Shown: piece by piece, positions 32,158 to 55,185 of the stretch | Layout of the letters: every line of letters begins with the position of its first letter | Position numbering within the stretch: position 1 is the stretch's first letter | Source of the DNA: Eutreptiella sp. 'Long Island Sound 2002' | Taxonomy: Eukaryota > Protista > Euglenida | Assembly: GCA_964036045.1 (NCBI GenBank) | Contig: OZ038379.1 | Coordinates: forward strand, 10,602,001-10,666,000 | Reading direction: 5' to 3' | Length of the DNA stretch: 64,000 nucleotides | Translations under genes and position numbers: made by a program | Notes under the pieces: model-generated | Told to the model about the DNA's origin: nothing | Databases searched by the model: none | Seen by the model: the letters and a program-made list of their open reading frames with translations, nothing else

Positions 32158-35100
32158 ATGGGCTCTCCACATTACCCTCAAGACTGGGAACGCCAGGGGT
32201 ACCCTCCTTGGCACCCGGTCGAGCCCGGTCGATGGAGGTTCCTGCTGCACATGGCCCCGATCGTATGTGCTACGGCTGTCATTCCGCGGCTGAGCGATGC
32301 GCAGTCCCCAGGGGTCCTGCTGAACCGGCAGACGCTGTGCAAGCACTTTGCATACTCCGACAAGAACTGGGCCCAGGGGCGCTGGTGGACAGCGCTGCTG
32401 TATATGTTCGTGCACAGCGATGAGCCCCACCTGGTATCCAATATGTTCTCCCTCATCAGCCTGGGCTGGTCGGTGCACAGGTGTGGGGTGTCCCTCTCCG
32501 ATACCTACCAAGTGATGGAAGGGCTTGTAGGCGTGGCGGGTCCGGATCATTTCCTAGGGCACCCCTGCATGCGTATGCACATGCAGTGCGAGTTCTGTTC
32601 TGTTGCGCAATGAGACAGACAAAGCACCCCCCAGTGCATGGCGGCACAAAGTGGTCCCCCCAATCAGAAATTTGTGCAGGCGCATTTCGTGAAACCCTCT
32701 GTGTTGAGGCGATGCCACCAGCCTTTCCGTCACTGCACCTAATTCCTTGCACTCCTTCTACAACAAGCAGAATTGACATCAAGACTGGAGGGAGTCGCCT
32801 GCGTACCCACTGCTCAGATCGTCCACAAACACAAACCCAAACACAGACGGGATCTTGTTGGAAATGGATAACTGCGTGGCATGTGCGTTTGCGTGTGTGC
32901 GTCACACTTCGCTTCCCTTGCTTGCTGTAGAAAGGTTCCCTCGTTGTGTGAGACACGCCGTTCCGCAACGCTTGCTGCCAGTCCTGCTGCTCGTATTTGT
33001 AGCGGTTGTACATTCAGGGAGGCATCTGGAGGCATCTTGTTGCCCTGTACAAGTCGCCCCGCGCCCGTGCGCGTCCGTCCTCCCTCACTTGCTCAGTGGC
33101 TCTGCGGGCATTTTCCTGGCAACGGCTTCTTTAGAGGAGGCATGGGTTTTGAACGGGCATGTGGTGCGCGCGGCTGCATGTGTGCGCACGTTGCCCGTGT
33201 ACGTGTGCCTGTGTGCATGTGTGAGTGCACATGGGCGTGCATTGCCTGTGCGTGTGTGCATTTGCATGCATGCATGCGTGTGTGCATTGCGTCTGCGCGC
33301 GCACGTGTGTGCACGTTATGTTGTCTATGTGCCCCCCCTCCCCCTTGTGCAAACAACCCCCTTGTCCAAACAAAACGTTGGCGTTCTTTCCGTCAATGGT
33401 GGCGCCATGGAGGTTTGCGATTTCGTACCCCCCCCCCCCCTTGCGCAAGCACGGCCTTGTCTAAGCACGAAGACCCCGTGTGACCGTTGTTTTGATGGGT
33501 TTTTCTGACCACGGTTTTTATGGTCAGAAATTCATTGTTTCGTGATTGTGCGCTGATTGTACAGGGAAAGAAGGGCTGGGTCATGTTTGTGATGGTTCCT
33601 CTTGCTCACAACAACATTCTGATTGGTAGTGCAACCCAATGGTAATTGTTTTGCTGTGGTTTTTAGCCATGAAAAATGTTGCTGTCGCTGGCTTGGGTGT
33701 CACATACATCCGATCCACTGGTGAGCATGCACCTGCCACCATCGTTGGTCCTTCTACGCGTGGAGATGACTTCATTCATTTGAAGTACATGAGGAATGGG
33801 CATGAATGGACAAGCTCTACTTCACCAAAGATATTGTTGATGACAGTTTTGTCCCCAAGAATAGGAAGCCTAAACCTATTTCCAAACCTGCAGCCAAGCC
33901 TGCTCCAAAGCCTGCCCCGAAGGGGAAACATGTGCAACTATTTAAGATGAAGCGCAAGGTTGGAAAGGGTTTCTATTCCGTACCCGTTGATGGGCAGTAA
34001 GGACACAAGGACCATGCTGAATTTTGCCTACACGTTGTGTTCTAGTGCCATGTTTGTGAGTGATGTGCTTGGTGTGGGGTACGGGCAGGTTTTCTGTGTG
34101 CAGTGTCTCTTTGTGTTGCGCGTCGCGCGCAAGCACGGACTTGTCTCAGCACGGGGACCCCGTGTGACCGTTGTTTTTCTGACCTTGGCCGTGCTTGCGC
34201 AAGGGGGGGGGGGGGTAATGCAAAGGTTTGCTTTCTGGGCCCTTGTGGTACCCCCCTCCGAAATTCACAGTCTTGGGTGTGAAGCATCACCGGCGCCAGC
34301 ATGAAAGGGATTCCAAGGGGCAGACGCGCACTTGTGAGCAGAGGGACCACTGTCCCACTCTCACCTGGTGAGAATTCTTTGCCCCAATGGCTTGGAACAA
34401 GCGACGAGAACATTTTATTTGTAAAGGCCCAAACCAGTGCGCACACCCGGAATTGCTAACCGGCACACTTACTCTGCCTTTATGGTACCCCTCCCCCATT
34501 GTGAGAACAGCGCCCTCGCCAAAACAGCCTGAGGTGCTGACTCTGCAAGTTTTTGAACCACGGAATTTTGTGGTTGCCCCTGATAAGCAGGTCTCTTCCG
34601 TGATTTGGGGCTGGGGATGGTATTTTGGGGATGCTGATTACTGTGCTGCCACTTGTTGCCCCTCACTTGCATGTCCCTTGCCCTGTTCTGCTCCTTGCTT
34701 CACCTGCTTAGCTTTGCTATCACTGCTTGTGTCTTCTCAGTGCGCGTGTCAGCAACGCCCTTGTCAGAACAGCAGGAGGTGCTGCTCCCCTCCGTTCAAG
34801 TGTTTTTACCGCTGTTCTCAAAGGGGCGGCGGCGGCGGCGGGAGGGGTGGGGGGGCGTACCTCTGGGCTAAGCTGCAAGATGGCCAAAAACCCTCGTGTC
34901 AGGGAACCTGATGTGGGTACGGTGGTGTTCGTATCCGCTACACGTGAGCTGTTGTGTACAAACAACACCCTTGTCCAAACAACGCTCGGCATGATGGCCG
35001 TCAATTACTTGGCCATAGCCGTTGCATGCGCAAAGGAGGGGTCACGCGTGTGCGCACATGTGCACGCGTGCATGCAGCTTTTGTGTGGGTGCATGTGTGC

Positions 35101-37249
35101 GTGCGTGTCGTGTGCGCATGCACCCGTGTGGCAGACCTGGACAGCTGGATTTAGTCCAGACAGCAAGTGCCCTGGACCTCAACCCCTCCAGCCTCTTGCC
35201 TGCCACCACCACACACAGGGGATTCGGTCCGCTGGCGTTGTACAGTCTGTACTTCGGGGGCGGTCTGGCGGCCATTCTGGATAAGAAGGCGCGGGTCCGT
35301 GAACTGGGCAGCCAAATGTACAACTGGGTGGCCTTGGCCGACCGCTGGGGTGCGCTGGGGGACGTTGTGAACAGCATGACCAAGAGCGTCAGCAACTTGG
35401 TGGCCCCTCGCCTTGCTGGCAGCCAGTACGTCGTTGGAGCCAGTGCAGGTGCCATGCGCTGTATCCGAAATGCGTGTTGCCTATGTGTTCTGTAGGTTGT
35501 CAATCGTTGTGCATGCCAGGGACGGATATCGTAGTGACGCATTCATTGAGGTGGGGCTGGGGTTGGGAGGCTCTGCTGAAAGGCGCACAAGATGACGAAT
35601 TGACGGTTATAAAAGTCACAGCCAACCTCTTTCCAGGTAGGAGTCCCCGTCGTACGTGGCGCCGCCGAATGAACTGTTAGAGTCCAGCTCTGACAGCGAT
35701 GAGAGTGAATTTAGTCGAAGGTTGGCTGAATGTGTCATTAAGCCTCGGCAACAGTTTATTTTCCATCCTTTTTGCCTCCAAACTCAAACCCTGTGCAGTT
35801 CTTTGTCTCTCAGCTTATCTTACCATGGGCTGCACCCACCAGACGGAGTTTCGGAATCGTCATTTCGTCATCGACGGGGGGAGGGGGCGGCGGCGGCGGG
35901 GGAGGGTTTATATCCATTCTGGTGTCGTGGTACTGTAGTGTGCAACGTTGCGTATGGATGTGCTTTCTTGTGTATGTATGCTTGTGACAGCCCCGCCGAG
36001 TGTTTTGAAAGCATCATGCTCGCTCCTGGCCTAGTGTGCCCCCTCGCGCTGCGTGCGACCACCTCTTCCGGCACTGCGGAGCTGTCGCCCGCTGCCAGCG
36101 GGCCTCATGAACATCTCAAGACCTGTGCCCAGCATCAGGGCCACTGCTTTTTGGACAGCCTTGGTCGGTTATCCACTCCCCTCTGTCCTCCCCACCATGC
36201 TTGCAATTCTGCATTGATGGCTAAAGCCCGGCCAAGCCAGGCCCCTTTCTCAGTTCTGTCCATTGGGATTTGGCACCTGCGTTTGAAATCCATTTTCAGG
36301 GGAGTCCAAAAAAGTAGCACAAGTTGCACACCCGCATGTGCAGTGCCCGGATTGCCCCCGCTGTGGAATGTCGTGTTTTGAAGGTGGTGTTTGTGTTTCA
36401 AGGTGTTGTCGGATACTCTTGGATGCCGTTGTGCATTCTTTGTCGTTGTCTATGCCAAAAATGGCCCCGAAAGGAGGGGCTATGATGATCATTACAGTTC
36501 TTGGTGGCCCTCTCGTTCCACCGAGCAACTCGCGTTGTTACAACCGCCAAGTCTGCACGGTCGAAGCAAATGGGTCCAAAGGGGCCTTTAGTGTGGATGC
36601 GGCAAAACCATGTCGTCAAAGGTAATCAACTGTCCCTAACTGGGGACCTGTAGCTGCTGAAGCAATTGCGTCTTTGCACTTGGTCTTGGGTACCGGGCTT
36701 GTTTGGGTGATACATAGTCACGATACCCAACTGGCTCATCAAATGGGTATCCCCTCAAGCAATGCACGAAAAACAGTCCCTTAATCAATCATTCGGCTGA
36801 TGATAGCCTGGCGCCTGGGGTGGATGCCTCCTCAACCGTTGCCTTCCTTTGTGGCAGGTGTATGCTCTATTCTGGGGGTGCACATCTGCCTTCTGGCCGA
36901 GACCCTGGCCGAAGGGGTTGCTGGCAAGAGACCCGAGTCCGTCGTCATGATGCTTGGGGAGCTCCTCCTGTGTCTCCAGAATGTGCACTACCAAGTGGAG
37001 AACTACGGCAAGTCCAACGTCAGCCATGCACTGCACCTGAACGGCGTTGCGTTCGGACTCGTGTGGTACGCTGTCGTGCGGGGCCTGCGCTGGGCTTCAC
37101 AGGCTCGCAGGCGGCACGAGCAGTCACGCGGACCCAGGCACTTACGGCAGCCAGGCTCAGGCGTCGGGGTCGGGCTTGCGATAGGGTTGGGGGTCGGGTT
37201 GGGGCTGCTACTGCGGGGTGTGCCTTTGGGGGTCAAGGTCAGGGTCTAG
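32158..37249 (+). CDS. Rhomboid-family intramembrane serine protease, 3 exons, ~314 aa
   Basis: Exons 32158-32480, 35219-35448, 36858-37249, GT-AG, total 945 nt. Motifs: GRWWTALLYMFVHSDEPHLVSNM (WR-loop / HxxxxHxxxN), GASAG (catalytic Ser), SHALHLNG (catalytic His region). The true start and the Gly-rich C-terminal tail are uncertain. Confidence 0.85.
33428..34215. mobile_element. TA-flanked poly-C/poly-G TIR element (AAGCACG subfamily, 788 bp) with internal mini-ORF remnant
   Basis: TA|C13-TTGCGCAAGCACGGCC ... GGCCGTGCTTGCGCAA-G13|TA; 51-bp direct repeats at 33443-33493 and 34127-34177 (47/51 identical). Confidence 0.9.
34488..34857. mobile_element. TA-flanked TIR element (AGAACAG subfamily, 370 bp)
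   Basis: TA|CCCCTCCCCCATTGTGAGAACAGCG ... CGCTGTTCTCAAAGGGG..G|TA; degenerate direct repeat AACGCCCTYGYCARAACAGC..GAGGTGCTG at both ends; interior is homologous to 39480-39705. Confidence 0.75.
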
Positions 37250-38099
37250 CCAGGCCTCGTGACTTTTACGGCCCTCAACGATGGCGTCCCGATGGCCTGG
37301 GGCGCGACCATTCTGTGTTTGGCCGGTGATTGTAGGGGGTGGTGCTATTCAGAGTGAATGAATGAAGAGCAAAGGAACCGGGCCCCGGTTTGCGGGATTA
37401 CAGTTGCCCCCCGTCCATCCATCCGTTCGCTGCCAGACAGGGTCGCCGAGCTCAGAGAAGGCCGTGCTGTAGCGCAAAGGGGGTTAGTTGCCATTACCCG
37501 CCGAGAGCTATTGTTGCTCAGAAACAATTGTGGTGGTGTTCAGAGAAGTTGGCCAATCTGACCAAGCTTGTCTTTTGCTACCCTCTCCCATTGAAAAACC
37601 CATCTTGCACAACTACTTTTTGTCGTCAAGTTCCGACCAAGCCTCCTCGGTCGTATCTCAGAAGTGTAATGACGAGGCACATGTGAAAGCCCACCACGGA
37701 ATCATGCGTATTGGGGTTGGAATTTCGCCGAAGTTGTATTTCATCTTGGATGGCGAAATGTGTCATGTGCCCCGATTTTTTTCCGGATTGGAATTTTTCG
37801 GCCCCTCTCGAGCCCCAGTTGAACAACAACACCGTCCTGAATGGCTGACAAATGCACAATGCTATTCGCTGTGAACACAGTGCGCGCAGCCCACACAGAG
37901 GGTAGGGATGGGAATTCCAGCCCTGCAGACGCTCTTGAAACGACCCAGAAAAGTATCATGAATTATTGCGCTAATTTGTTGCACATTTAATCCGGATCTG
38001 GGTGGGGATTTGAAGTGCGCACGCGTTCAGGAGCCCATTTTGCCTATCCCCATGACTGCTGACGTTTTCCATATTTTGTTGCACCCTGCAACAGAAGTA

Positions 38100-38275
38100 T
38101 TGTTGCTGTTGCCGCTGTCGGTACGGTCGTCGTCGTCGTTGTTGTGGTAGTCTCGTTGCTTCTGTTGTTGTTGTTGTTGTTGTTGTTGTCGTCGTTGTTG
38201 TTTCTGTTGTTGTTGTCGTTTGTGTTGTTGTTGTTGTTCTTGTCGTCGCCGTCATTGTTATGTCGTTGTTTGTGG
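38100..38275. repeat. (GTT/GTC)n trinucleotide microsatellite
   Basis: Direct reading. Confidence 0.9.
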
Positions 38276-38749
38276 TCGCCCAACTGGCAACACGAAGCCA
38301 TCTGTTGGTTTTTGAGAAAAGCCCGATTTTTGGTCCGGAACAGAGCGTTTGTTAATGGGCAGGATGTTTGGGAGTGGGCAGGATGTTTCTTTCCATGGAA
38401 AATAGTCACCGCAGGCCAACCTTCTGTTTGCTGCACCAAGGTCATTGACAAAAGGGGGTCCAACCCAATTTGGGGTTGGGGTGGGGACGGGCGCTGGGAG
38501 CGTGTCGATGGGTGCGTTCCAGGAAAGGACTCTTGACCCACCCAGCCCCCAGGGGCCAAGCAAATGGTTGGGAGGTGGAGAAGTCATGAAGCCCTTCTGG
38601 CCTCGAGGTTGGGGATGGGCAGGCAGATGGGGTAGAGCAGCCAACCCATTTCCATGATCACTGGTGCACTGTTGGAATCATACTGGACACATCCTGGGCT
38701 CGGGCGATGACTAGCCACAGCATCTGGAGACGCCCTTGGCTTCCAAGTT

Positions 38750-39796
38750 CCCTCCCCCCCCTTGGGAGAACAACCTTGTGTCAGATCTACAGTAGGTGTT
38801 GTTTCCACAACTTATGGAGGGGCGGGGGCCAGCAAGCAGCCCCCACGCAAGGCAGCTAAAGCGTTCCCAAGGGATGCCGTTTGGGGGGGCAAGCGGCCAG
38901 TCCCTCAGGGACGCTGGGGGAGGCCTCCCCCACGCAGCAGGGGGGCACCTGAATCCCCACCCGAGGACGAGGAGCACGGGCCACCCGGGGAACTCACTAG
39001 CATGCGGGCAGCCGGCAGCGCTATGCTACCCCCCTCCCCCCCCCCTGCACTGACCTCCGGGAAAGCGGGGGGCTGGGGCAGGGCAGCGGTCAGAACGAAC
39101 GAACGAACGTGCTTCAGGGCAGGATCGCGCCAAAGACGGCGCCCGGCACAGGCCCGCAGGCAGCCTCCGGCACTGCGGTGCTGCTGAAGCACGGGACTGC
39201 AAGGGGCCAGTTTGCACTGGACATCACCAGGGCCGGGATGCCGTCGGAGGGGCCGGGCCAGAGCCAGAAGTCACCGCACCAGGGAGGTCACACGGGCCCC
39301 GGCACGGGCCACGGACGGGCCAGCGAGGAGGAGACCTGAGCCTTTGGCGAGGATGCTTCCCTTGCGACGTGTACACAAGGGGGGAGGCGTAGGGAGGTGG
39401 CACGGCGGCGCGGCCCCGTCCTGCCTCTAAGCTGACACTCGTATGCAGGACCTTAATCGGCTACTTTGTTTCCGCAACTTTTGGAACCCCGGAATTTTGG
39501 CGGTTTCATTTTCTGGTTGTCCAAGAAGACCAGTTTTTCCTGTGATTTGGGGCCTGGGGATGGTATTTTAGGGATGCCGGCTCCTGTCCTGCCACTTGTC
39601 GATCCTCCCTTGCACATATCATGCCTCATTCTGCTCCTTGCTTCACTTTCAGAGGACGGCAAATGAAGGGTACGGTAGTGGTGGTCTTATTGCTTGTGTC
39701 TTCTCGCCCCACACACAGAGTCCTCGTGTCAGAACAACAGTGGGTGTTGTATCGGTCAAATTTTGGAACTTTACCATTGTTCTCGCAAGGGGGGGG
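38750..39796. mobile_element. Poly-C/poly-G TIR element (AGAACAA subfamily) interrupted by a 652-bp insert
   Basis: C-run + TTGGGAGAACAA ... TTGTTCTCGCAA + G8 (11/12 TIR match beyond the runs); interior homologous to the element at 34488; insert 38814-39465 flanked by TTGTTTCC(A/G)CAACTT. Confidence 0.72.
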
Positions 39797-39935
39797 TGGT
39801 GTGGTGTGTGAAATTTGGGTTCAAAGAGGACATTCGCTTTCAGCCATCTGAGGTCAAGCAGGAAGAGATGCCGCTGCGATACCCAACCACATTCCGCACC
39901 GGTTGCGCATCTAACCACCTTTCTTGGTACACGTA

Positions 39936-40038
39936 CGCCCCCCCACCCCTTGCGCAAGCACTGCCTTGTCCAAGCACGGGACCGCGTCTGACCGTCGTTT
40001 TCCTGAGTTTCAGTGTGCTTGCGCAAAGGGGGGGGGGG
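39936..40038. mobile_element. Minimal single-block form of the AAGCACG-subfamily TIR element (~103 bp)
   Basis: TA|CGCCCCCCCACCCCTTGCGCAAGCAC - one copy of the CCTTGTCCAAGCACGGGACC..TGACCGTCGTTTT block - GTGCTTGCGCAAA-G11|TG. Confidence 0.8.
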
Positions 40039-41788
40039 TGACCCCCCCCCCCCCTGCCCAGTCGCTTGGTCCGGAGACCCTGGACCTGGGTTACATCAGT
40101 GGTGGTGAGCAACCTCCAAACTTCACTTTCATGGGGAAGACTTGGTGTGAACCATGCCAGCCTGGGCATGGGAGGGACCCCGAGTGGCTGAAGCAGCACA
40201 TGTGAGCAGAGGGACAACTCACCAACCTAAAATGCGTTTCCCAGCGTCTGTGGACAAACAATGTATCTTGAGAACCTGAACCAGTGTGTCCTCCTGGAAG
40301 TACCGACGGGCGCAGTTACTCAGCCTTACAGCGCAGTTACTCAGCCTTATGGCACCCTCTCTGAAAGTGCCTACCCATTTGCAACCATTTGTCCTCTGTA
40401 TTCACATATGTATTCACTGGAGGCACTACTGGAGGCTGGAGCAGGAGTGGAATGGTTCATAACCCCTCTTCCGTCGTCTGATCCTGCGAAGTTGCCGAAT
40501 GTTTGGGGTCTCAAGGACAGAGTGGCGGCGGATTTCAGTACACGCTATGGCCATGTGGAGTTGCCTTGGGCAATGACACAGCAGTCGCATTTCATTCATA
40601 TGATTTAGTTGGGCTTGCTCCATGCAGTGCCAGACTCTTAACGTAGGATTGACGGGTTTTTGATGCACGTTAATGGTTGCATATGTTCAGAGCCACGTCA
40701 TGCTGGCAAAATCAATCCCTTCAATCCACGTGGCAAGGCAATTTGGGTCATGTTGTGCAGGTTCAGCAACACCATGACCACTATCTCCATTTGCATTGCA
40801 GTCTCGTCTCGGGTTTGTCAGAATCCCCACAAAACCCCGCAATCACCACCTTTTCCTCACGCCTAGCTGCCAACGCAACACACAGGTCAACATTGGGGGC
40901 TCATGCATTTGCATACAGAAAGGAAATAACAAAACAGTCCCTGTCAAAATCGCGCACTGCCTGCGATCATGCACCGAAATATCATTGCAAACATGATCTT
41001 AGCCGGGGAGGGGTCCCGCTGAGCCAACACGTGGTTCCGGTGAATCCCGCCCTCTGCTGCAGGGAGATGGGAAGCATCTAGCAGGGAGCCAAGGAGGGTC
41101 AGTATTGATTCAAGTGGTTTAGAGGCTGGCTGGGTGCATCAGAGGCCAAACAACATTTTGACGCTTGGAATACCATAGCAAAGTTTCCTCCTTCGCTGAG
41201 GGCTCTCCAGGGCTGTAGAGGGCTGTGGAGGGGGGGTTGCTGAGCGGTGCTGAGGATGGTGGAGGGTTGTTGAAGAGTTTTGATGGTTGTTGAAGGTTGC
41301 TGAGGGTTGTCGAGGGTATGGGCGATTGTAGAGGCTCGCTGATTGTGCACTTGATTGAGGTGGATCTTTAGAGGGATCTGCAATCTGTATGAAAGGCTGT
41401 GGAGGGTTGTTCAGAGCTATGGAGGGCTGTGCAGAGTTTGTACCTGCAAACACGCAAAAAAAAAACCAGCGCGAAAAAACAAACAGAACAGACCCAAGGG
41501 AAGTCAGGTTTTCAACTTGGGGGAAGGGGGGTCGATAGAGCTCCCCAAAACTAGGGGGGGGTTTTGGGCAAAGGGCGCAATTGACAGGACCATTAATCAG
41601 TTGTTATGAACTCTGGCCACGAAGCTGCTGAAGTTTTCTAAAGTATTGAAAATGGTTAATTTTTTTTTTCACCAAATACATGGCAAATGATGACTTTTCT
41701 GAACCCCCGTGATGCGCTGATTCCAAAAATCCCATTTTCCTTTTTCGCCGAATTTTGGATCCAGGTCACCTCCGGGGCCCGGGTGTCA

Positions 41789-42022
41789 GGGGGAGTATCG
41801 GACGCGGTGCGTGCGCGGTGCGCGCGCGGTGCATGCGCGGTGCGGGTACTGGGGTCGTTCCGTAGACCCTTTCATCCAGAGCCAATCGGGGGGAATGGTA
41901 ACGCCTCAGAGCCCAGCAGGTACCATCTACAACTCCTCTCCCCGTAGACCATCTCCTGGAGAAGTTGTTCAAATACCTGACGCGGTGCGCGCGCGGTGCA
42001 TGCGCAGTGCGGATACTCCCCC
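41789..42022. mobile_element. PIF/Harbinger (Tourist-like) MITE, 234 bp
   Basis: 11-bp perfect TIR GGGGGAGTATC; 3-bp TSD TCA (41786-41788, 42023-42025); removing it restores the flanking repeat. Confidence 0.9.
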
Positions 42023-42135
42023 TCAGTCTCCGTAGGATTTTGGGGGGGGCGTCGATTTAGGCCCCTTTTTTGGGGGGGGGGGGGCTAGCCAGAGGGCTGT
42101 ATTGAACCCCCCACCCACCCCAATCATTTTGGGCT

Positions 42136-43080
42136 GGGGACAAACAGGATCACTTGCGAACAAATGCATCATTTGTGGTTGTGGACGATTGGTTGGTTGT
42201 GAACAAATGAGATCCCTTGTGGACAAATGGGATCCTTTGTGGTTGTTGTGGATAAATGGGATCAGGCAGAGCAAATGGGAAAACACAACAACTCGTAGCC
42301 GTGGACAAACAGGATCACCTGTGGACAAATGGTATCACCTGTTTGTTGTGGACAAACGGGATCACTAACTTGTTGGCAAACGGGATCACCAGTGGACAAA
42401 CCGGATCACCCGTGGTCAAACGTGGACAAATGGGATCATCCATAGACAAATGGGATAACCCTTGGGACATTTGTGAGTACCTGCTGGGGTGTAGTGTGTG
42501 GGCTGAATTGCTGTGTTTGTGTCCATGTATGGGGTCTGTGTGTCTCCACTGCGTGTGGGTCTGTGTGTGTCTATGACCAACCTGCCTGATACCTGCCAAC
42601 ACCTGCCGGAACATTTCATAACACCAGCCGACACCTGCCAAAAATTTTCGTGACACCTGCTGACACCTGCCTTAGCAAGTATGAAACGGGATCACCCGTG
42701 AACAAATGGGACCACCCATGCCCAATCCATGGACCAACGGGACCACCCTTGGACAAACAGGACGTCCCGCGCACAAGCTGTGGACAAATGGGATCACCTG
42801 TAGAAGAACGGGATCACCCATGGACAGACAGGATTGATCACCTGTGGGCGGATGGGATCGGTCACCTGTGGACAAACGCGATCACCTGTGGACAAATCAT
42901 AAACAGGATCACCTTTGGACACACCATTTGTCCACAGTTGATCCCGTTTGTCCACAGGTCGATCCTGTTTGTTCAAAGGTGATTGTCCACAATGGACAAA
43001 TGTGAGAAAAGGGATCACCTGTATCATGTGTGGACAAAGCAGTTGGAGACAAAATGGGATAATGTGGACAAACTGGGATC
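42136..43080. repeat. Degenerate ~20-bp tandem array GTGGACAAA(C/T)GGGATCACC, with ACACCTGCC (42590-42670) and AGATGACATG (43130-43240) sub-arrays nearby
   Basis: Many copies in both orientations; the inverted partner array is at 51010-51308. Confidence 0.85.
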
Positions 43081-43640
43081 ATGCAGCTGCGGATGAACCA
43101 GGTTCCCCTGGCACCACACTCACTTTCCAGATGACTAGATGACATGGCACACCTTTTTCGTGACCTGAAGTGTGTTTAGATGACATGAAACCCACCCTCT
43201 AGATAACATGACACTCATTTTCGAGATGACATGACACTTCCAACCACAAATGATCCTGCTTTGTTAGTACTTCCGCAATCTTCTGCCCCCCCCCCCCCCC
43301 ATTTGTGACAATCCAAGCATTATAGACTCGACAGGCCTCACTCACTGTTAGTCACTCAACGACTCCTGCCAACCCTCGTGAGGCCTCATTGAGCCTTGAC
43401 GAAAAAGCTAGGCCTTCCAAATCACAGTGTTGAGTGATCCCGATCCAACACAAGTTGCCCAAGTGTTACTCTTTTGGATGGGTTTTTCGCTCCGAACCCC
43501 CTCCAAAACCCTTGGCCACCCTCCGTAGCCATCCACAACAATTAATTCTATGGAATCAAACACAACCACATTTTGAATGACTGTTCTATGCCACTCCTGG
43601 TTTGCCAACAATTGCAGAAGATCTCAGAATGGTGATGTAA

Positions 43641-43945
43641 GGGGGCGCCTCAAGCGCAGTGCGCGCGCAGTGCGTGCGCAGTGCAACTATTTGGGCGTCT
43701 GGCCGTACTAGAGACCCATACTTTGAGATACTAGGGGCCCCTAGGGGCATCATGGTGACCCGTAGCGGAGGTTTTGAGTTCTGATTTTGTCCCCCTTTGT
43801 TGGGGACCCCCGAGAATGCAGGGGTGATGTAGCATTTCATGTTCATGGTTTCTATGGCGTTTCCAAGGGGTGTGCTTGGGGGCTCTTCGGGGGGAACATA
43901 GTCTAAAAGTAGCGCGCAGTGCGCGCGCAGTGCAAAGACTCCCCC
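43641..43945. mobile_element. PIF/Harbinger (Tourist-like) MITE, 305 bp
   Basis: TAA|GGGGGCGCCT ... AGACTCCCCC|TAA; GCGCAGTGCGCGCGCAGTGC inside both ends in the same orientation. Confidence 0.8.
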
Positions 43946-44542
43946 TAAGGACAATGTATAATCTTATGAGGTTGATGGACAAGCGTGGTCCAAAGCCGGG
44001 AAGTAGTTCATTTCACCAGCGCAATTATTCAGGCAACCGTGGCAGGAGTGCACACAGCAGAGTGGAACCTGTGACATAGTGCAAAATATCAACAGGCAAT
44101 AATCCGGCTGTTCCTGGAACAGCCACCTCAAAACATGCATGGACCAAGTACTTCTGTGCGGAACCCATGGACGTCTCTCCGCACGTCATTTACTGGTTTT
44201 CCTGATACGCCTGAGTTGCACGTTGGGGGAACCGAATTACAGGGGATGCACATATTGGAATTGACGTTCCACAAGGGAGTTAGGGCGCATACCTTGGCTG
44301 GGTCTATGTCTCGGTACACAGGGCTTCAGGCCGCGTGAGGGAATACTCCGTGCATGTGCGCTAAAGAATGGAGGACCTCCATTGTCTTGGGCCTCAATAT
44401 CCATAATTGTCCTCCAGGTGTAGCTCCGGTTACAACATCCATCAGAGGTCTCAGCCGGGTATTACTTGGGGTCTTCTGTGATCCATGAACACCCAGTCAA
44501 TCTTTTCTTCAGAGGCTGTCTTCGAGCATCCTTTCTTGAGCC

Positions 44543-46303
44543 ATGCTTGCCGCACACCCCTGTACCGAGCCAACGGATCTCGAGCTGTGCCAAATCCCCA
44601 GCGAGAGCTCTCGGCTGTCAGCCACGGAACAGACCCCAAGGGTCAGGGCCTGGCGCACCAAGTACGACAAGCTCTTCAGTGAAGCGCACGTCCCGACCGC
44701 CGCATGGGAACAGCTGGACAACGGCCAGTGGGCGTGTCATGTCAGCCGGATGGTGTTCGCCACCGCGGTGCAGTGCATCAACCACCAGCGGAAGTGGCAG
44801 TACCAATGCGACCTGGAGGCCTCGCACTTACGAGAGGACACGGCGGTTGTGAAGGCGTTGGAGCGGAAGGCCCAAGAGGAGAAGGAGCAGCTGCGGACCG
44901 CCGCGGCGAAGCAGCGGAAGAAGACGAAGCGCGATCTGACGAACGAGGTCGACCGCCTGGGGGACCTCCAGCGTCGCTTGGAGCGCGAGTTGGCCCTGGC
45001 CGAGCAGCAGTTGGAGATGATGCCGGAGCTGCACCGGCGTGAGCTGCGGAACGTCAAGTCGACTTACCATAGCAAAGTCAAGGAGTTTGCGCGGCGGCTG
45101 GAGGCCCCGCTGGAGGAGTGCCTGGGCCTCGACCAGATCCATACGGACCACGGCACGCCCACGAGTGGGTCTCAAGGGGCTCCGCGTCAGCGAGAGACCG
45201 ACCCCTCACTGCCAACGCAAGCCGGTCGCGTCCAGAGCGGCCCCGGGGGACTTGCGCCGAGCGTGTCGGTTAGTCCGACCGGCACACCCGAGGGCACACC
45301 GACGCCGTCGCGGACAACCCCGGCCCCCGGCCGCGCGAACCCGGGGGTCGGTCGGACTGACGACGGCGCGTGCCCGGGGAGGTGGCCTCTGTGGGCTCCA
45401 AAAGGCAGCCCCGTCCCGGGACCTGAGGCGGATCGCGCTCCCAGAGGCGTACACCAATGCCTGGGACTCGGTCAGATCGAGACACCCCACGACACAAGCC
45501 CAACGGGCCCCCCGCCCCGCGACTGCGCACTGCCTTTCCGGGCGGATCGCCCCACGGGCAGTGCGGGACCGGGACCCCTGGAGCAGTACCTCCGACGGGA
45601 CGCAGGCGAAGGTGCGCCCGCGGGTGGCCCACAACGGGCGCCGTGTCAGCCACAGAGCGACCCTCCACCGCCGACACAGGCGGGTCGCGTGCGCCCGGAG
45701 CCGGGCTTGGCGGTCAGCCAGAGCCCCCTCCAGCACGTCGACCACTGGGGCCTCAATGCGACCAGCACCGTCAGGCCGGTCGGGCAATCGGGGGGTCCCG
45801 ATGCGAGAAAGACGAAGTTTCCCACCATCGCATGCTCCCTGACCCCGCCCGGACGTGCCCGGCAGGCGCACATAGCGGCGGCCGTCTTCGTGCCCCCGCC
45901 CGTCCCCGCCACCACGATGGCCTCCCAGTCTGCGGACGGGGGAGCCCACGCAGGCGAAGACCCTCCCGCGAAGACCCCCTCAGAGGGCGCCCTGCGGAAG
46001 CCCCAAAGTGACCGTCCCGCAGCCGCTTTCCGCGACCCAGTGCAATACCTGGGCGTCGGGCAGATTGAGACACAGGAGCGCCCGGGCCCGGGCGGCGCTG
46101 ATCCGGAAATGCCGCGCGGGGGTCCCCTGCAGAGTTGGTTGTGCCCTTGGGGCCCCGCCAAGTTCGACGCCCTCGCGGGCCTGCAGAGCCTGGGCATCGC
46201 AAAGTTCTGGCAGAGCTCGGGATCTACGGTCCCTGAGGACGTGAGGCAGGCTTTCCAAGACTCTGATGTGTGCATGCAGCCATGGCCGACCCGCAGGTAC
46301 TGA
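44543..46303 (+). CDS. Orphan 586-aa ORF: N-terminal coiled coil plus Pro/Gly/Thr-rich region with internal repeats
   Basis: 1761-nt GC-rich open frame, GC3-rich codons in the coiled-coil part (ERKAQEEKEQLRTAAAKQRKK..LERELALAEQQLE); pyrimidine-rich AG acceptor at 44511-44512 upstream; CAG|GTACTG near the stop could be a donor. No recognisable domain. Confidence 0.6.
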   Translation: MLAAHPCTEPTDLELCQIPSESSRLSATEQTPRVRAWRTKYDKLFSEAHVPTAAWEQLDNGQWACHVSRMVFATAVQCINHQRKWQYQCDLEASHLREDTAVVKALERKAQEEKEQLRTAAAKQRKKTKRDLTNEVDRLGDLQRRLERELALAEQQLEMMPELHRRELRNVKSTYHSKVKEFARRLEAPLEECLGLDQIHTDHGTPTSGSQGAPRQRETDPSLPTQAGRVQSGPGGLAPSVSVSPTGTPEGTPTPSRTTPAPGRANPGVGRTDDGACPGRWPLWAPKGSPVPGPEADRAPRGVHQCLGLGQIETPHDTSPTGPPPRDCALPFRADRPTGSAGPGPLEQYLRRDAGEGAPAGGPQRAPCQPQSDPPPPTQAGRVRPEPGLAVSQSPLQHVDHWGLNATSTVRPVGQSGGPDARKTKFPTIACSLTPPGRARQAHIAAAVFVPPPVPATTMASQSADGGAHAGEDPPAKTPSEGALRKPQSDRPAAAFRDPVQYLGVGQIETQERPGPGGADPEMPRGGPLQSWLCPWGPAKFDALAGLQSLGIAKFWQSSGSTVPEDVRQAFQDSDVCMQPWPTRRY

Positions 46304-49300
46304 GTGGACCCCGGGGGGGACCGGCTGAAGTGGGCGGGTGCTGTACTGCAACCTCTTCGTATGCCCACTTCAGTGCAAGGCCACTGTGCCATGCCACCGA
46401 TGATCTTTCATTGCTGACGTTTGCTTCGTGCCCCCACTTTGTGCTGTCGTGGTATGCGAGTTGTCTTGAGCATCTGCTTCCCACAGTGGGGGAGGGGGGG
46501 TCGGAGGGGGGCATCTCTCTGCTTGCCACCACCATTGCCTCCTCCGGTCCCTCCCGTGGCACCTGCGCCTTTTTTTCCCCTGTTAAGGCCCCTGCAGCAT
46601 GTCACTGATGATGTATCATTGCTGACATTTGCTTTCAGCTCCCACTTTGTGCCCCAGCGGTACACGGGCTGTCTCAAGCATCTGATCCCACAGCGGGGGC
46701 AGCGAGGCCCGGTTTGAGGTGCAACTGGACCCTGCTGAGACACAGAGCCTACGCAATGGTCCAGCAGGCCACGATAGTCATGGCATGTGGTGCAGTGGGG
46801 AATCACCGGTCTGCATAGGCTCACATCCGCGCATGTCTTTCTGGCTCCTGTGGCCCTTACACAAAGGGAGGCACTGCAATTTGCGTTGTTCGGCATTTCT
46901 CCGCATTTCCTTGTAGTTCGTGGTTCCTGGATTCTGTGGTGCATGTCGTTTGTACTGTCACTATGCGGTTGCGAGCCTCCGTGATCAACTGCGGAGCGTA
47001 GCGCAGTTCGTTTGGATAGTGTCCTGCAAAAATATATACGTATGCCCGATGTGCCGCCTGTGCTTGTGGTCATCGCCCTGTGGCTTTTGCTGTTCCTGGG
47101 CCTCCAAATTATTGGGTGTTGCAGTCGGAATCATGTCGGCAAACTCAGGTCAGCTGGAGTTGTACCTGCTCGTCTTTTGCCATTCTGTGTCCACACCCGG
47201 GCGGCGTGGTAGTCGGTGCATGCGATATGCAGCAGATTGCATGATGGCTTTTTGAGGCATCAGTTGCCTGCACAGTCCTCACGGCCCAACCTCGAGAACT
47301 GCCGCGTGCTGCTGCCTGCATGTCCTACGAATCCGTAGCAATAGGGGGCCACAAATATGCACGAGGCTCGCAATCTGCAGGCAGCAGCCTCGACGCAGTT
47401 TGTAGCAGGCCTCAGCGGCTGTTCGTTGTTGTTAAGTGGGGCGTTTCCAAAGCACGATGGTGTCATGCAGGATGGCCACAGCAAAAATTCTGGGAGCCGC
47501 CAGTGGAGGCCATGACTAAAGCTGCGCTCTTTAGGCCCTTTGTGCCTTTCCAGATTGTCGAAAAAGGCTGGCGACTCCTCTGGGGAACGCGCGGAAAAAG
47601 TTCCAAACAATACGATCAGTTGGAACAACAAGGGCTACACTACAGCGTACCATTTTGCCGCACTTTTTTCGAACTTTTTTTTTTATAATGCTGTTGGATC
47701 GCATTCCGCCCACGTCTGACGTCCGTCTACCCGCGAGCCCCTGAGTTGATAGTCAAGTCTCCTACGTCTCACAGTGCGTCGGCGCAGCTCTCACGTAACT
47801 GGCTGCTTCAAGGGTCCTGCTTGTATCTTCGTTTTGTAAGATACTTCCAGTGCCACAGTTCGTGTTCGCTGTACTTTTGGCAAGACGCTGAAATCTTCTC
47901 ACCTGCGAGCCATTGACTCCGACGCATCCATCCAAGCCCAAGCCCAAGCACAGCGAGCTTGTTCTTGCCTACGCAGTGGGGCCGACAACACCATAATAGC
48001 TCGTTGGGGGCTGGGGGCTCATTTGTGCGTCTGACAGAGTTTCTTGAGTCTCTTTCAGTTACGGTGGGTTGTCAACAGTTTTTTTTTACCCGAGATTTAG
48101 GCCTTGCACACCTGAGGCCACAACCCGCCTCACAGCTGCGCTGCTGCGCCAACCCTCAAGGACACAGGTCTATGCCCCGTCTCTTGTCTCTCTCCCCTCT
48201 TGTCTCCATTGCTGTCACAGTGGTCCATTGGCAGTCCCCAGTCCCTGGTCCACAGCCGAGGCCCCTTCTGAGGCCAAGGCCCTCCACAGCTGAGGGCAGT
48301 GTTCTCTGTTCCTTGCCCAGCAGACAGCAACAGGGCTGCTGTCCATGCTGCCAGCCCTGCCTGTACTCCTACTCTTGCCCGCGCACACGTCCCCGCCCCT
48401 TGATCTGCTGATCCATGCCGTGGTATCACATGTCGTGAATGGCATAACATATATAGCAACGCTACCTCCGATCCTTCCAGGAAGCATCAGGGGGCTCCTG
48501 AGGACGTTCAGGCAGAGAGTGTCTGAGGTAGCAGTGATGGGTAGAGGAGAACGCTGGATATCAGGCTGCCTGGACAGGTACACTACCGGTCAGCTTGCGT
48601 GCAGCTCATCCCATCCAATCTCTGCGGAAACCCTGAACCTCCAAGTTTTTTCCCCTAAGGTCAGAGCAAGCCTGAACCCCCAGGTTTCGCCCCTGTACTG
48701 AATTGGATTGTTTGAGCAGCGTACAACAAGAACTACAAACTACAAACTACAAACTACAAGAACCCCAAGGATCGCGCTTCTGACACCAGTTCTAGGTACC
48801 AGTAAGACTGAATATGACACGGCATGTGAGCATTATGTATCAGATGATAGGCATACGAACAAGGCGTTGCGGAAGGTGGTACGAGAGAGTGGTCTGGAGG
48901 GGGTCTCAACAGTGCACGGAGTCGTCATTCATTGCCACAGGCATCCAACCGGGGGCTGTGGCAATGGCCGCACAGTGCAGCACTACTAGGTCCTGGGGTA
49001 GGAGTCGTTGGTGGAGGAGAAGGCACGATTTACGAGGAGACAGCGCATTGATGGCTCTTGTATGTGCTCCCCCCCAAAATTAGGCCTCCGCAGTAACCCC
49101 ATGGCCTAGTGTTCTGCGCTGGGGTCTTGTCTGCACACAGGACTTCAGGCATCACAGGATGATTTGCAATGTTGCATAATTCTCATTTAGCGTTGTTTCG
49201 GACTCTGTTTCGAGGGGGTCCCAAGCACGCCACCCAAATTTTCGCCAGATGCTGTCGGTGTACGTCACAGGCAGCACCGTCCTCCTAGGGCCCCCGTGTT

Positions 49301-52300
49301 TCAGACAGTGGTCTCCCACATGACCCCCTGGTAGCTCTTGTGCATTATAAGAGTTGCTTGGCAGATTGAGCAGTGCTGCAGTGTAGTGGTGCCTAATGCA
49401 TCCATTCGCTACAAGATATTGGGTTGACTGGAACGGAGAAAGCCACCCAAGAATGTCCTGCACAGCCGAGATGGGCAGGATGTTTTGGAATCAGTGAGTG
49501 CATGAATGGCGGTTGTTCTTCTTCGAGTGTGAGGGGCAAAAAAGATGACTGTTGCTCATCACAACAGATTGCACGAGAGGTGTAGCCAAACGGATTACAC
49601 ACGTATGAACGTACCGTCATTCGCAGTTGAATGAGTGAATGCTGATGTGACAGCATCGAAAAGCCACAAGGGATTGTAGTAGGTACATGTCACAGCCGTG
49701 CGTTAGGGGGGAATGTTAGCGCGCCGCGCACCTTTTGTGACAAACAGCAAATCACTCTTATGCAAATGCAGGCAACAATCTATTGAATTGGTGGAGAAAG
49801 ATGCAGTTGCCTGTTGGTTTCTGCAACGTGTTCGTTCTGCAGGACAGGCATCATCCGTCAACTCACAGAGTATATATAGCTATGAGCTGTGTAGTTGCCC
49901 AGCAGGGGCTGTGCAATGGTCCGCACGGGCAGCATTGCAGAGTCTGGGAGGCTCGAATGTTGCCTTTATGACCTTGCCTCCGAACCAGGTCTCCACAAGT
50001 TTTTTGTGCATTTGCTCGCTACACACTTTAATCCCCCCCCCCCCCCTCAGCTGGCTGACAAATCCCCCCCTTTTAATTTGCCCCTTGTCTTCAGTAGACC
50101 ACCATAGCCCAGGAAAATAGCATATTGTGGGAAGGTAGGGGACTGGGAGGGGTTGGTAAGTGGCAGATCTGCAGTTACCAAGGGCAGTTGGTGGTCAACC
50201 CACAGCAGTTGGTGGCTGGCTGCCACTTTCTTTGGCTGACTTGCAATGGGGGTCTGCCATTTCTGTCGTCTTTCAACGGTTAGGACAGTCTAGGATTGCA
50301 ATGCGGATTTTCTTTGGCGAATGGTGCGCTGTGCGTGCGCTGCGCAGTTTTCACACTATCCCATACCAGAGAGGCATACTTTGTGGTACTGTGGGCTTCA
50401 TTGTTGTTTGATAATCGTAACTAGGACTGAATACCACACTGTGCCCTCGTCCGTGGCCTTATCTCCGTCCTTGTTTGTGCCCATGTTTGTATCCCCACAG
50501 AGTAACGTAGAGGTGGTTGCAATATATTGGTGGCAAAGGTTTTTATATCCCAGGGCACGTTGCTGTGCTGTATTGACGGTATAGAACCACAATTTGCTGC
50601 TTTTTCTGTCACAGTTCGTGTCCCTAGGAACCCGCAAGAAACCTAATGGTGTTCTAGCTAGAATGCGTTTTCTAATTGGCTAGAATACCATTAGAACACC
50701 TCATAATTTCCCCTTATCTGTTCCAACACGTTATGCGGTGTGCGTGCGGTGCAGGTACTACCTCCCAAGCCAACTTCTACATCCACGTAGGACCCCAAAG
50801 GTCCAGCCAGATGAGCTTGAGCTCCTGGGTCTTGCACACACCTTGCACGAACCCTGCAAGGTTCCTAGTCTCTCCAGGTCCTCACATACAGCAAGCAGTG
50901 TACGGCCAGGCCATTCGAGGACAAGCCTTCGTGTTACTGCCATCAGCTTTACTGCCATGATCCTTGCTGCCATGAGCCTCTCGCCCTGACGGTGAATTGG
51001 GGGCCTCATTCACCCGTTTGTCCACAACAAACAAGTGATACCGTTTGTCCATTTGCCCCCCCCCCCCCCAAGGTTTCTACACAAGTGATCCTAGTGATCC
51101 TATTTGTCCACAGGTGATCCCAGTGATCCCGTTTGTCCACAGGTCGTCCCCCCATTTAAACTGTCCACAGGTGATCCTGTTTGTCCACAGCTACGAGTTG
51201 TTGTGTTTTCCCATTTGCTCTGCCTGATCCCATTTATCCACAACAACCACAAAGGATCCCATTTGTCCACAAGAGATCTCATTTGTTCACAACCAACCAA
51301 TCGTCCACAGCCCAAAATGATTGGGGCGGGCGGGTTTTCAACACTGGCAAGGTTGGGGGGGGTGTCAATACAGCCCTCTGGCTAGAACCCCCCCCCCCCA
51401 AAAGGGGCCCTAAATCGACGCCCCCCCCCAAATCCTATAGAGACTGACACCCAGGCCCCGGTGGTGACAGCTCTGGCAATATGGCAACCGGGCCCCCGAA
51501 CACCTGGCCAATACGGTAAGCTCATTAACATGGTTTCCTACCCCGTCCAGTTCGTCACAAACATATCCCAATACAAGAACATGGAATGTGAAGTGCTTCA
51601 CTCAGTATGCGCACCTGGACTTGGGCCTGAAGTCATGGCAGTATCTCCTGAAAGATGGTGTCACTCGACGTTAGCCATACGTTGGCATTGACACCAAAAA
51701 AAACGAACCAGCTGAAGCATGTGATACCTCAAAGGCATGGTGCTCCCAAAGAATGTGTATATGTATTTCTAGATTTCAGGTGCTGTGGATTATGCAGTTC
51801 ATGCGCTGCTGCTGGCACCACACATCGCAGGAGCTGTGGTGTTCACATAGCCGGCCTTGAGGCGTGGCACTCTTGAGAGTGCATCTGCAGGCGCCGGCCT
51901 CTGTCACACACGTCAGATGGTGCACGATGGCCGAGATGGCCTGCGAGGGAGCCCCTTCCTCTGTCGGCAAGATGGAGTTCCTTAGTCCAATTGCGATCCA
52001 ACTGGAGAGCACGGAGGGGGTTTGACCACCATCACGCCCAGGCTCCTTCAAATGCATTCCCACAAAAAAACGTCGCAGAACAGGTCCCAGAAAAGGACAC
52101 CCCGTTCCTGGCAGAGATACACCCAACTGCGGCACAGCCGATGTGTTGGTCCGCACTGCAATCTGACCAGAGGACTTTTCGGGTACCCAGTTCACACGCC
52201 AAGTTTCTTGAGGCAAATGTGCCTTCTCGTGCCAATCAGGTGCTTTATGTATCCCCTGCCGCAGTCTGCTTCGTGCAGTGCAAGCAGAGCGCGCCCCACG

Positions 52301-54608
52301 TCCACCACACGGCAGTACAGGAGACGCATTGCTCCGAACGGTGTCTTCCATCCATTCACATGCGCAATGCATGCAGACCATTCTGTGGTGTATCATGATG
52401 GCCGTGTCCTTCTGACTTTCCGATGAGGGTCAGCCGGATGCTGGCTCGACAGACAACCCCCTGAACTCACTACATCACGTTGGCACCAGCAGGGAGCTTA
52501 GGTGGTGGAATGACTCACGCGCCTTGGCTGTGTGACTGAACCTACGAGGCCCCGTTGCCAAGTTTCTCCCAAGCGCACGCTTTGACACAGGTGCACACTA
52601 TTTTTTTTTGTGGGCAATGCCGCAAACCCCCCAACAGCGCTGCACAAGAAGCTTCATGAACAGGGGAGGCTGAGGTTGGCTCGCTTGTTGCTCCTCTACA
52701 TTGAAGGTGTGTTGGTGCTGCTACCGCTACCACTGCCTGCAGTTTGGCGCCTGCACATGCACTTGCACGGTTCAAAACACAGAGCTATGGAAAAGTCTCC
52801 GATGGATGCTGCTGCATTTGCTGTTCCACCTGTTGGCAGAAGTAGCGTGATATTGTGTGGTAAGGTGGTCGGCTTCCCACAGAGCTTCTCACAGTGGGAA
52901 GGCTCATTCCAGCCCCTCAAGGGTTTAGCATGAGGTTGATCGTGAAAGGTATTGTATGGGCGTGGAACCAGACATGTTAGCAGAAGGTGCCCCCTCAAAA
53001 GGCCTTTGAGGAGCCGCTGTGATCGCACTGCGATCATGTTATCACTGAGGAAAGCATGGCTGATTCAGGACTATCAAGCATCCCTCGCCCACAGCCAGTC
53101 ATGGGATGCTGTATGCCGTGAACACATGAACTTGGAGGCGCTGATGCCTTTGTTTGCCTGAGCCAGCTGGCGATCTAGGTGTTGGAATAAAAAAGTAAAA
53201 ACAAAGAATATCAATTGTGATTGTGTGGAGTTGCCTTTGGCAATGCCACAGCAACTTCTTCTGCGGAGAAGTCTGTGTATGTTGAGACTGCGGCAGTGTG
53301 CTCCGTCCCATGGACTGAAGTTTTCCCCACCAGTGTACAAAGTTTCAATTTTGTTCCCCTGATGGAAAACTCGTTAAGACGGGGCCCAAGGGTGCGGTTG
53401 CCTGCCCCAAATTTGCATTGTGCCGAGTTGGACCTGCCTGTGCGTGCGCGCCACATGAATAGTCAACTTGCATGGTTTCAGAGTTCATTTCATGTTGTTG
53501 CGCTTTTTTCTGTAACCCCCCTAGACTTGGCAGTGGCTTCACTCCACCTCCGGCCCTGTTGCTTGCTGTTGCTGCTTGCTGGCGCTGCTAGATGCTGTTG
53601 CCAGTTGTTGACCGACACACCATGGGCGTCCCCAAGGGTCGTGAGCTATTTGGTGACTGGCAATACCACTAGCTCCATGTGTCGGCTACCCACTGTAGGT
53701 ATGGCCTTGCTCGATTGCCCAGCTCTACTCCCCTCCAATAATGGGCACAACTAACAAGGCAACTGTGGGAAACCCGGCAGGGGTTGAAAGAGCATAGTGG
53801 GAAGTATGACACCCCCGCAAGCACAGATGGTTGAGGTTGACTACATGATGCCCGCCGACACTCCCCCAAGTACCGGCGGGTTTGAGTTGAGACACTTTTT
53901 ACCATGGGTCCCACATAGTCTCAGGTCTGGTATGAGCCCCCTCAACGTCCTTGACCACCTTCTAATAGGTGAAAAATGGCCATGCTGACCCATGCAATCC
54001 CCATGACCTTCTTCTTTTCTGGCTATCTTTGCCCCGCTTTCTCCTTCACCCGTTTCTACAGGGCATCTTAATGGTCCTGGGCTGTGTCGCAGAGTTGACG
54101 CTGTTCGTGGACCCAACAGCCGAAAAATCAACACTGGCAATATTCCAAATGAAATGAAACGGAGATCCACACAAGCCGGCGTCTCACAGCCGTGAACGCA
54201 CCCTGCTGCGGAGAAAAAAGTAGTGTCGGAATCAGTGCCGTTTGACTGGTGGATGGTCATTGCACAAAGTGGCCATGTGCAACGGGACGGGGGGGGACCC
54301 AAAATCAGATGAGAGGTCCTAATCATCCTCCTCCTGTGGAGGCCAGTGCAGTGGGATGAAACTCAGGCATGCAGGACGAATTTCGAGGCATTCAACATGA
54401 AAATTGAGGCAGGCATGCACGATTTTTTCTGAAGATGTCATTTTGCATCGCATTTTGCATCGCATTTTGCATCACCGCACCTAATGAACATGGATTTTGC
54501 ATCTCATGCAGCCTGTCCTTGGGATAAATCAGAATTTTGCAGGCCAGTTTGCTGAAATACTGTAGGTTTGTATTGCTGTGTCCCCTGGGTTTGTCAGCGG
54601 GAACGGTA

Positions 54609-55185
54609 CCCCCCCCCCCTTGTATAAGCTACGCCCTTGTCCAAGCTACAGTAGGCGTAGGGACCGTAATAATTGTGTACGTAATTTTAATTACGTACGA
54701 AATGTAGTGCGGCCACATAAGACATGGGTTTGTCATCACATTTGCCAATTACATGGAGCCATGGACACATGCAACATGCCACATGCAAGGCAAGCTCATT
54801 CCCAAGAATTTGAAGTTGTCCGAGCCCAAACCAGCCCCTAAGCCTCAGCCAAAGGCATCTTCAAGTGGTGAGCATGTGCAATTGTTCCGCATGGTGTATG
54901 GTCGCAAGAAGGGTTTCCAAGCCGAACATTTGTAGGCTTCGCATTCTTCATTGCTTGTGCCAACATGGGTGTGAACCTGAAAATTTCATGTTCCCAAGGC
55001 TGTCTTGTGTTTGCATACACTTGGAAATGTGGGCAGAGGTCAAGGTGCACCCATACCATGCGCGCGCGCACGTTTGTGTTGGTAGTTGTATGTGTTTCGC
55101 GCAAGCTACGCCCTTGTCCAAGCTACAGTGGGCGTAGGGACCGTAATAATTCCGTACATTGGCGTAGCTTATACAAGGGGGGGGG
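54609..55185. mobile_element. TA-flanked poly-C/poly-G TIR element (AAGCTAC subfamily, 577 bp) with internal ORF remnant
   Basis: TA|C11-TTGTATAAGCTACGCC ... GGCGTAGCTTATACAA-G9|TA; 49-bp direct repeats at 54626-54674 and 55103-55151 (48/49 identical). Confidence 0.92.

Follow-up and report, generated by a model that had tools for sequence, protein, structure and literature searches.

A putative pogo-type transposon family in the genome of Eutreptiella sp. carries one subterminal block in direct orientation at both of its ends

Why would a DNA transposon bounded by terminal inverted repeats (TIRs) carry the same block of about 50 bp, here called X, in direct orientation at its two ends? The question is raised by a 64,000-nucleotide stretch of the genome of the euglenid Eutreptiella sp. 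'Long Island Sound 2002' (assembly GCA_964036045.1, contig OZ038379.1, positions 10,602,001 to 10,666,000; hereafter the window), in which a sequence-only reading had described four such copies. [quoted passage not shown] All window coordinates are positions in the 64,000-nucleotide stretch, + strand. The four copies and their parts are as follows.

33428-34215 (+): subfamily B MITE, 788 bp, with TA duplications at 33426-27 and 34216-17 (33426..34217 with the TAs).
33428-33456, 33443-33493, 34127-34177 and 34187-34215 (+): left TIR, left X, right X and right TIR of the B MITE.
54609-55185 (+): subfamily A MITE, 577 bp, with TA duplications (54607..55187 with the TAs).
54609-54635, 54626-54680, 55103-55157 and 55159-55185 (+): left TIR, left X, right X (then a 9-nt spacer) and right TIR of the A MITE.
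39936..40038 (+): short solo-X form, 103 bp, B-like and diverged, consisting of TIR, a single X, spacer and TIR.
30396..30609 (+): TA-flanked 214-bp deletion derivative of an A-related sublineage with the TIR word TTTGTCCTAGCTACGC.

The layout described for the two longer copies (TA, poly-C TIR, direct X pair, poly-G) was present in both. The B MITE starts with 13 C and ends with 13 G, its TIR is perfect over 29-31 bp (29/29), and its two 51-bp X copies, in the same orientation, are identical at 47/51 positions, exactly as had been reported. For the A MITE our own alignment gave 52/55 identical positions over a longer span than the reported 48/49. The single X of the 103-bp form was likewise confirmed, as was the presence of only the right X in the 214-bp derivative, where the left X is deleted, the right one is kept (30526-30580) and the region around the transposase start codon is retained.

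The same layout was evaluated across the 2.28-Gb assembly (below, L0xx labels denote sampled genomic loci, P0xxx labels proteins, and C1 and C18 contigs). The end of subfamily B occurs 3,149 times genome-wide and that of subfamily A 5,432 times, with no matches to the reversed-pattern controls. We tabulated 36 long copies drawn from randomly fetched complete copies, and 34 of them contained the full direct repeat X, which measured 46-67 bp, with 88-98% identity between the two blocks of a copy; TIRs that were perfect over 22-30 bp were also found in 34/36. The two exceptions were one copy split by a long interspersed nuclear element (LINE) and one with a truncated left block. X directly adjoins the TIR at the left end. 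At the right end it runs in the same direction, so that it is reversed relative to its own TIR, from which it is separated by a spacer of 3-9 nt. Left-type ends (TIR followed directly by X) numbered 3,092 genome-wide and right-type ends (TIR, spacer, reversed block) 3,393, and the 45 end pairs on contig C1 comprised 28 left-right and 17 right-left pairs, with no left-left and no right-right pair. Thus, the concern that most copies might lack the second X or carry it inverted is not borne out, as 45/45 pairs join a left end to a right end.

The tips of the element are homopolymers, C on the left and G on the right, of about 11 nt, followed by a specific TIR part of 15-17 bp. Among 41 tabulated complete copies the median length of the poly-C/poly-G tract was 11-12 nt (range 6-15), with up to 29 nt in L072, and the lengths at the two ends were uncorrelated. 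Four segmental duplicates of one truncated element (L069-L072; G000:C18, 11.57-11.69 Mb) have poly-C tips of 7, 16, 18 and 29 nt, which implies that the homopolymer changes length quickly after insertion. An interrupted tip, TA-CCCC-G-C8, was seen in one sublineage, at both ends in L066 and at a single end in L073 and L075.

The boundaries of the element could be read from a nested insertion. In L058 a B-type copy lies inside an A copy, and the host sequence reads ...ACC-TA-[element]-TA-ATTTT..., compared with ...ACC-TA-ATTTT... in intact A copies. This shows that the element spans exactly from poly-C to poly-G and duplicates TA. TA was found on both sides in 23/41 copies and on one side in a further 11/41, and the position -3 was G in 52% of the flanks, which corresponds to an insertion preference for G-TA-C. 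The copies of subfamily B are 93-100% conserved at the consensus level, and the B MITEs are very young.

Two sampled loci identified the parent of the small copies. L055 is a full-length-type copy of 2,460 bp with a 409-codon open reading frame (ORF) whose C-terminus corresponds to the short ORF of all MITE interiors, and L068 is a TA-flanked copy of 2,541 bp with an uninterrupted frame of 682 codons (680 residues from the first Met). X is present at both ends of these copies (53/56 identical positions in L055 and 54/55 in L068), about 250 bp ahead of the start codon on one side and about 170 bp past the stop codon on the other. The autonomous element is thus predicted to be about 2.5 kb long with one intronless transposase gene, and the L068 copy is apparently intact. 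When mapped onto the parent, every MITE size class consisted of a left part and a right part joined by one internal deletion; 54609-55185, for example, maps to parent positions 3-164 and 2053-2459. The breakpoints of these deletions lie mostly outside X, and all interiors are transposase-gene remnants, as in the window:

33806..34000 (+): transposase C-terminus remnant in the B MITE, 64 codons and stop, with the C-terminal motif of the full-length transposase.
About 33671-33808 (+): remnant of the N-terminal part of the transposase in the B MITE, upstream of the C-terminal remnant.
54708-54935 (+): transposase C-terminal remnant in the A MITE.

The small copies are 100-900 bp long and non-coding, are represented by thousands of ends, and have their ends and target-site duplication in common with the autonomous element. 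Since the parent bears the same ends, they are internal-deletion MITEs. The proposal that X might let interior segments be gained found no support in this mapping, which left only transposase leftovers as interiors and single deletions, mostly with breakpoints outside X, as the origin of the size classes.

The form of about 100 bp behaved as the sequence-only reading had expected of a product of recombination between the two X copies. It maps to both ends of the parent with an overlap that falls exactly on X, implying a deletion between the two X copies. Solo-X forms are known from three sublineages, and L059 joins a diagnostic base of the left X to the right-end spacer; the deletion must therefore have arisen at least three times. 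The solo-X form, in which both TIRs are kept, is a by-product of the direct repeat. A tandem array at L060 (G000:C1:168.42 Mb) has a period of 887 bp and at least 9 units with one solo-X form per unit, and these copies were thus amplified by tandem duplication and not by transposition.

Compared with DDE transposases, the gene carried by the longest members (L055/L068) matches a DDE family. Three proteins from two lineages matched DDE_1 (PF03184) with 21.5, 18.2 and 15.1 bits against a cut-off of 22, and the matches cover positions 16/17-175 of the 177 profile positions. HTH_Tnp_Tc5, placed upstream of DDE_1, scored 19.8-21.9 bits against a cut-off of 22.2 (lineage D, P0003). When the family profile was aligned by hhalign with a profile of the clear DDE_1 transposases of this genome, the alignment extended over 294 columns (E 5.5e-5), with three catalytic motifs in register (ANGDET, TADGAPAH and IQACD) that correspond to the pogo motifs, whose order is N.DE[ST], D(G/N)...H and P.D. 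An exhaustive search with the family profile found P0127 (E 1.7e-15), which is a clear pogo/Tc5 transposase (DDE_1 84.1 bits, HTH_Tnp_Tc5 46 bits) and the only one of these proteins with a clear HTH_Tnp_Tc5 match. The predicted catalytic triad is D307/D439/D475 with a D2-D3 spacing of 36, the third residue being D (DDD). As judged from these comparisons, the protein is a divergent pogo/Tc5-type DDD transposase of the Tc1/mariner superfamily, and its catalytic activity is predicted.

The order of parts in the transposase is an N-terminal module, a putative Tc5/CENP-B-type DNA-binding region and the DDD catalytic domain. In lineage D (L085:3169-4161:-, P0002) a bona fide WW domain (44.5 bits) separates the DNA-binding region from the N-terminal module, which is about 70 residues long. 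For the N-terminal module the ESM Atlas gave sub-threshold Tudor-like leads only. A word-indexed search of public protein sets returned three unnamed relatives, and sequence searches of the PDB with the protein and the family profile gave no meaningful match.

Other candidate partners were also considered. IS630/Tc1-type DDE_3 (PF13358) gave four matches, all on small contigs and without poly-C ends. The mariner profile Transposase_1 (PF01359) had no match in the genome, but as it had none in the control genomes either, this is weak evidence. The genome also contains a conventional pogo family (at least 789 DDE_1 candidates with ORFs of 650 amino acids); at 30 loci no poly-C TIR was found within 1.5 kb, so this family is not the partner. 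The lone long ORF produced DDE-type Pfam matches only and points to no tyrosine recombinase, although recombinase hidden Markov models were not run over all frames. With their TIRs and TA duplication, the elements do not answer to the description of tyrosine-recombinase elements (Crypton, DIRS/Ngaro).

What, then, is block X? In an alignment of the left and right blocks of six lineages, X starts with a second, co-oriented copy of the inner half of the TIR, located 17 bp downstream. The word in question differs by lineage (GCTAC, GCACG, CGAAC, AACAAC), while the TIR and the two X copies of any one lineage have it in common. In most lineages an inverted copy of the word follows and then an A/T-rich tail. 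Apart from a TGTC core, few columns are invariant across the six lineages. The layout was followed as far as lineage D, whose transposase is 55% identical and which retains it; still deeper lineages have 39-54% identity. In 17 A copies, retrieved with a search pattern that did not include X, the TIR and the X core were 94-98% conserved, compared with 65-88% farther inside. Such a pattern is the signature of a cis-acting site evolving in step with the DNA-binding protein of the element.

Other features were observed next to X. A palindrome with a stem of about 10 bp and a lineage-specific sequence follows the left X in every lineage (window 33495-33528 and 54669-54698; L068, L079), and the B-type copy of L058 is inserted at a TA in the middle of this palindrome. 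GCGCGC(AA) stands directly before the right X in A, A2, B and D (window 34118-34128 and 55095-55102; L068, L079), though the TIRs differ there. Three independent LINE insertions with reverse transcriptase and RNase H ORFs (L015:145-230; L056, minus strand near 5695; L057, minus strand near 6812) sit 1-5 nt apart, right after ...AAGCTACGCC, at the left-end junction of TIR and X; none was found in the right X, despite the same letters there.

The closest known counterpart is the Arabidopsis pogo-like transposon Lemi1 with its MITE Emigrant (Loot et al. 2006). There DNase footprints cover, at one end, the TIR and two half-TIR motifs that are contiguous and co-oriented over 56 continuous bp, and at the other end the TIR, a 22-bp spacer and two reversed motifs (PMC1636448); with this geometry the motifs are direct between the ends. 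For subterminal repeats of pogo that are bound by the transposase, the same paper cites Wang, Hartswood and Finnegan (1999). Both families are of the pogo type, in both a MITE derives from an autonomous partner and the inner (3') half of the TIR recurs in the subterminal motifs, and here too these motifs adjoin the TIR in its own orientation at one end, while at the other they are reversed and set apart from it by a spacer. Since a similar layout has been footprinted in Lemi1/Emigrant, X is best read as an asymmetric block that the transposase would bind, as had been suggested from the window. The ends had also been called an unusual architecture. They are truly asymmetric, but the match with Lemi1/Emigrant means that the layout itself is not a new principle. 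The two families differ in that the repeated part is here one block of 46-67 bp, 88-98% identical between the ends, and there two short motifs; in that the spacer, 22 bp there, is here 3-9 nt up to the block and about 30 nt up to the reversed words; and in that the termini are here variable poly-C/poly-G tracts and the transposase is far more divergent, with extra N-terminal modules. Binding was footprinted there and is predicted here.

The transposase of Drosophila pogo reportedly binds a 12-bp site twice per end, with the outer copies inverted and the inner ones direct; the family described here differs from it by its long block. In the fungal pogo/Fot1-like elements Aft1, Tan1 and Trem the TIRs consist of two 17-bp direct repeats (PMC2836289). 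The left end here similarly repeats the TIR word with a period of 17 bp, but in the fungal elements the repeat pair lies within each TIR and is mirrored at the other end, whereas here the block is direct at the second end. End asymmetry can matter in this superfamily, as Sleeping Beauty has a half-site enhancer in its left end only. With Sleeping Beauty and other Tc1 elements of the inverted repeat/direct repeat type the present family shares a TA target, two transposase sites per end (here predicted) and an inner site resembling part of the outer one (PMC5224488). In those elements, however, the inner sites are mirror-symmetric and the enzyme is of the DD34E Tc1 type, whereas here the sites are direct in 34/36 copies and 45/45 pairs and the predicted enzyme is a pogo-type DDD transposase. 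The likeness to Stowaway MITEs that had been noted in the window extends, for these and the Osmar mariner-like elements, to the TA duplication, small size and high copy number, and the superfamily assignment to Tc1/mariner also stood; the partner is not mariner-like as there but of the pogo type. No description of this family was found in the literature searched, and it is a new family of predicted pogo type with Lemi1/Emigrant-like asymmetric ends.

Under the reading that we prefer, the transposase would bind both the word in the TIR and the words in X, and the two ends would load different protein arrays, making left and right non-equivalent in the synaptic complex. As the mapping showed, MITEs arise by internal deletion of the parent of about 2.5 kb with both blocks kept, and deletion between the X copies gives the solo-X form of about 100 bp with both TIRs. 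Several observations weigh against this reading. The direct Pfam scores fall just under the curated cut-offs, so the superfamily assignment depends on the bridge through P0127, and the autonomous partners of subfamilies B and C were not recovered among the sampled loci. The variation of poly-C length from 6 to 29 is hard to square with a fixed distance between binding and cleavage sites. The role given to X rests on analogy and covariation, and in sublineage B2 X is without the inverted word. Finally, the whole block of 46-67 bp, including its A/T-rich tail, is near-identical between the ends, which exceeds what a binding word of 12-13 bp needs; this near-identity could come from copying of one end onto the other.

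A more elaborate version of the same idea seems to us rather improbable. It holds that the right end, through the left-like array within it, imposes an ordered and strictly left-right synapsis, that the slippage-prone poly-C/poly-G tips serve as a length switch by which individual ends are turned on and off, and that the extra N-terminal modules (a WW domain in one lineage and a possibly Tudor-like barrel) steer insertion to particular chromatin or to the transcription machinery. If true, such a regulatory design of synapsis and length switch has not been described for Tc1/mariner elements.

X could instead be chiefly a recombination module that lets the interior be lost by looping out, whether through homologous or site-specific recombination or in the form of circles, so that cargo is shed or swapped. 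The repeated origin of solo-X forms in different sublineages (at least three times), the L059 junction of a left-X base with the right-end spacer, and the at least 10 solo-X loci among 40 scored candidates all fit this view. However, solo-X forms are a minority, with 3 independent loci and one tandem array among the 45 end pairs of C1, and all other size classes have their breakpoints outside X. In addition, no foreign interior was found, every interior being a transposase-gene remnant, the full-length copies encode a DDE-type enzyme only, and any direct repeat of 55 bp is expected to yield such deletions as a by-product. We therefore regard this explanation as unlikely.

Equally doubtful is the view that the right X is a historical accident, that is, what remains, now without function, of a short element that had inserted into the right end of an ancestor or fused with it to form a composite. 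The right 100 bp do resemble a complete short form minus its poly-C, and in all lineages the letters before the right X (GCGCGCAA-word) resemble a B-type TIR (TTGCGCAA-word). Yet the right block is 88-98% identical to the left one within a lineage and strongly diverged between lineages, across transposases of 55% identity, and a neutral relic would have drifted from the left copy. Moreover, the right block is kept in 45/45 pairs and is better conserved than the adjoining DNA.

There is likewise little reason to favour a role of X in expression, as promoter or 5'-leader on the left and as 3'-end or terminator on the right, possibly through an RNA or DNA hairpin of the word and its inverted copy: its location, about 250 bp before the start codon on the left and about 170 bp beyond the stop codon on the right, the covariation of word and inverted copy in lineages A, B, C and D and the conserved palindrome after the left X of all lineages agree with it, but the word in X changes together with that in the TIR, pointing to the DNA-binding protein of the element itself, the non-coding MITEs keep both blocks and were amplified to thousands, and sublineage B2 has no inverted word.

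The family offers a natural and possibly still active model for the question why the ends of pogo-type elements stay non-equivalent, and the covariation of end words supplies ready-made specificity variants among its lineages. It also provides a well-defined pogo-type family for a 2.3-Gb euglenid genome, DNA transposons being barely described there in the literature searched. Of use for annotation is that the family accounts for several thousand repeats and for numerous short spurious ORFs, the latter being leftovers of the transposase gene.

The window contains further members in addition to the four copies of the sequence-only reading. The terminal pattern C8TTG, with one mismatch allowed, has 27 matches there where 3.9 would be expected, and three additional members were delimited:

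38754..39796 (+): member of subfamily C, 1043 bp long, that has the word GAGAACAAC and an X at each end (36/46) and lacks clean TA flanks.
34488..34857 (+): TA-flanked member of about 370 bp that has the word GAGAACAGC, an X at each end and an interrupted poly-G, nested in the older element 33332..35041.
About 33332..35041 (+): older degraded relative with the word AACAAC and the same layout, read by eye with approximate boundaries.

Both the 33428 B copy and the 34488 member are nested in the degraded element at about 33332-35041. Rfam gave no match in the window. At 42023-51447 the window also contains an element of 9.4 kb with inverted arms of about 300 bp (160 nt at 97%), which are dense in subterminal repeats of 20-24 bp resembling GATCACCTGTGGACAAATGG; its 586-codon ORF (44543-46303) had no Pfam match. 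In the assembly as a whole, the spliced-leader sequence of Euglena gracilis gave 5,458 matches compared with none in the reversed control.

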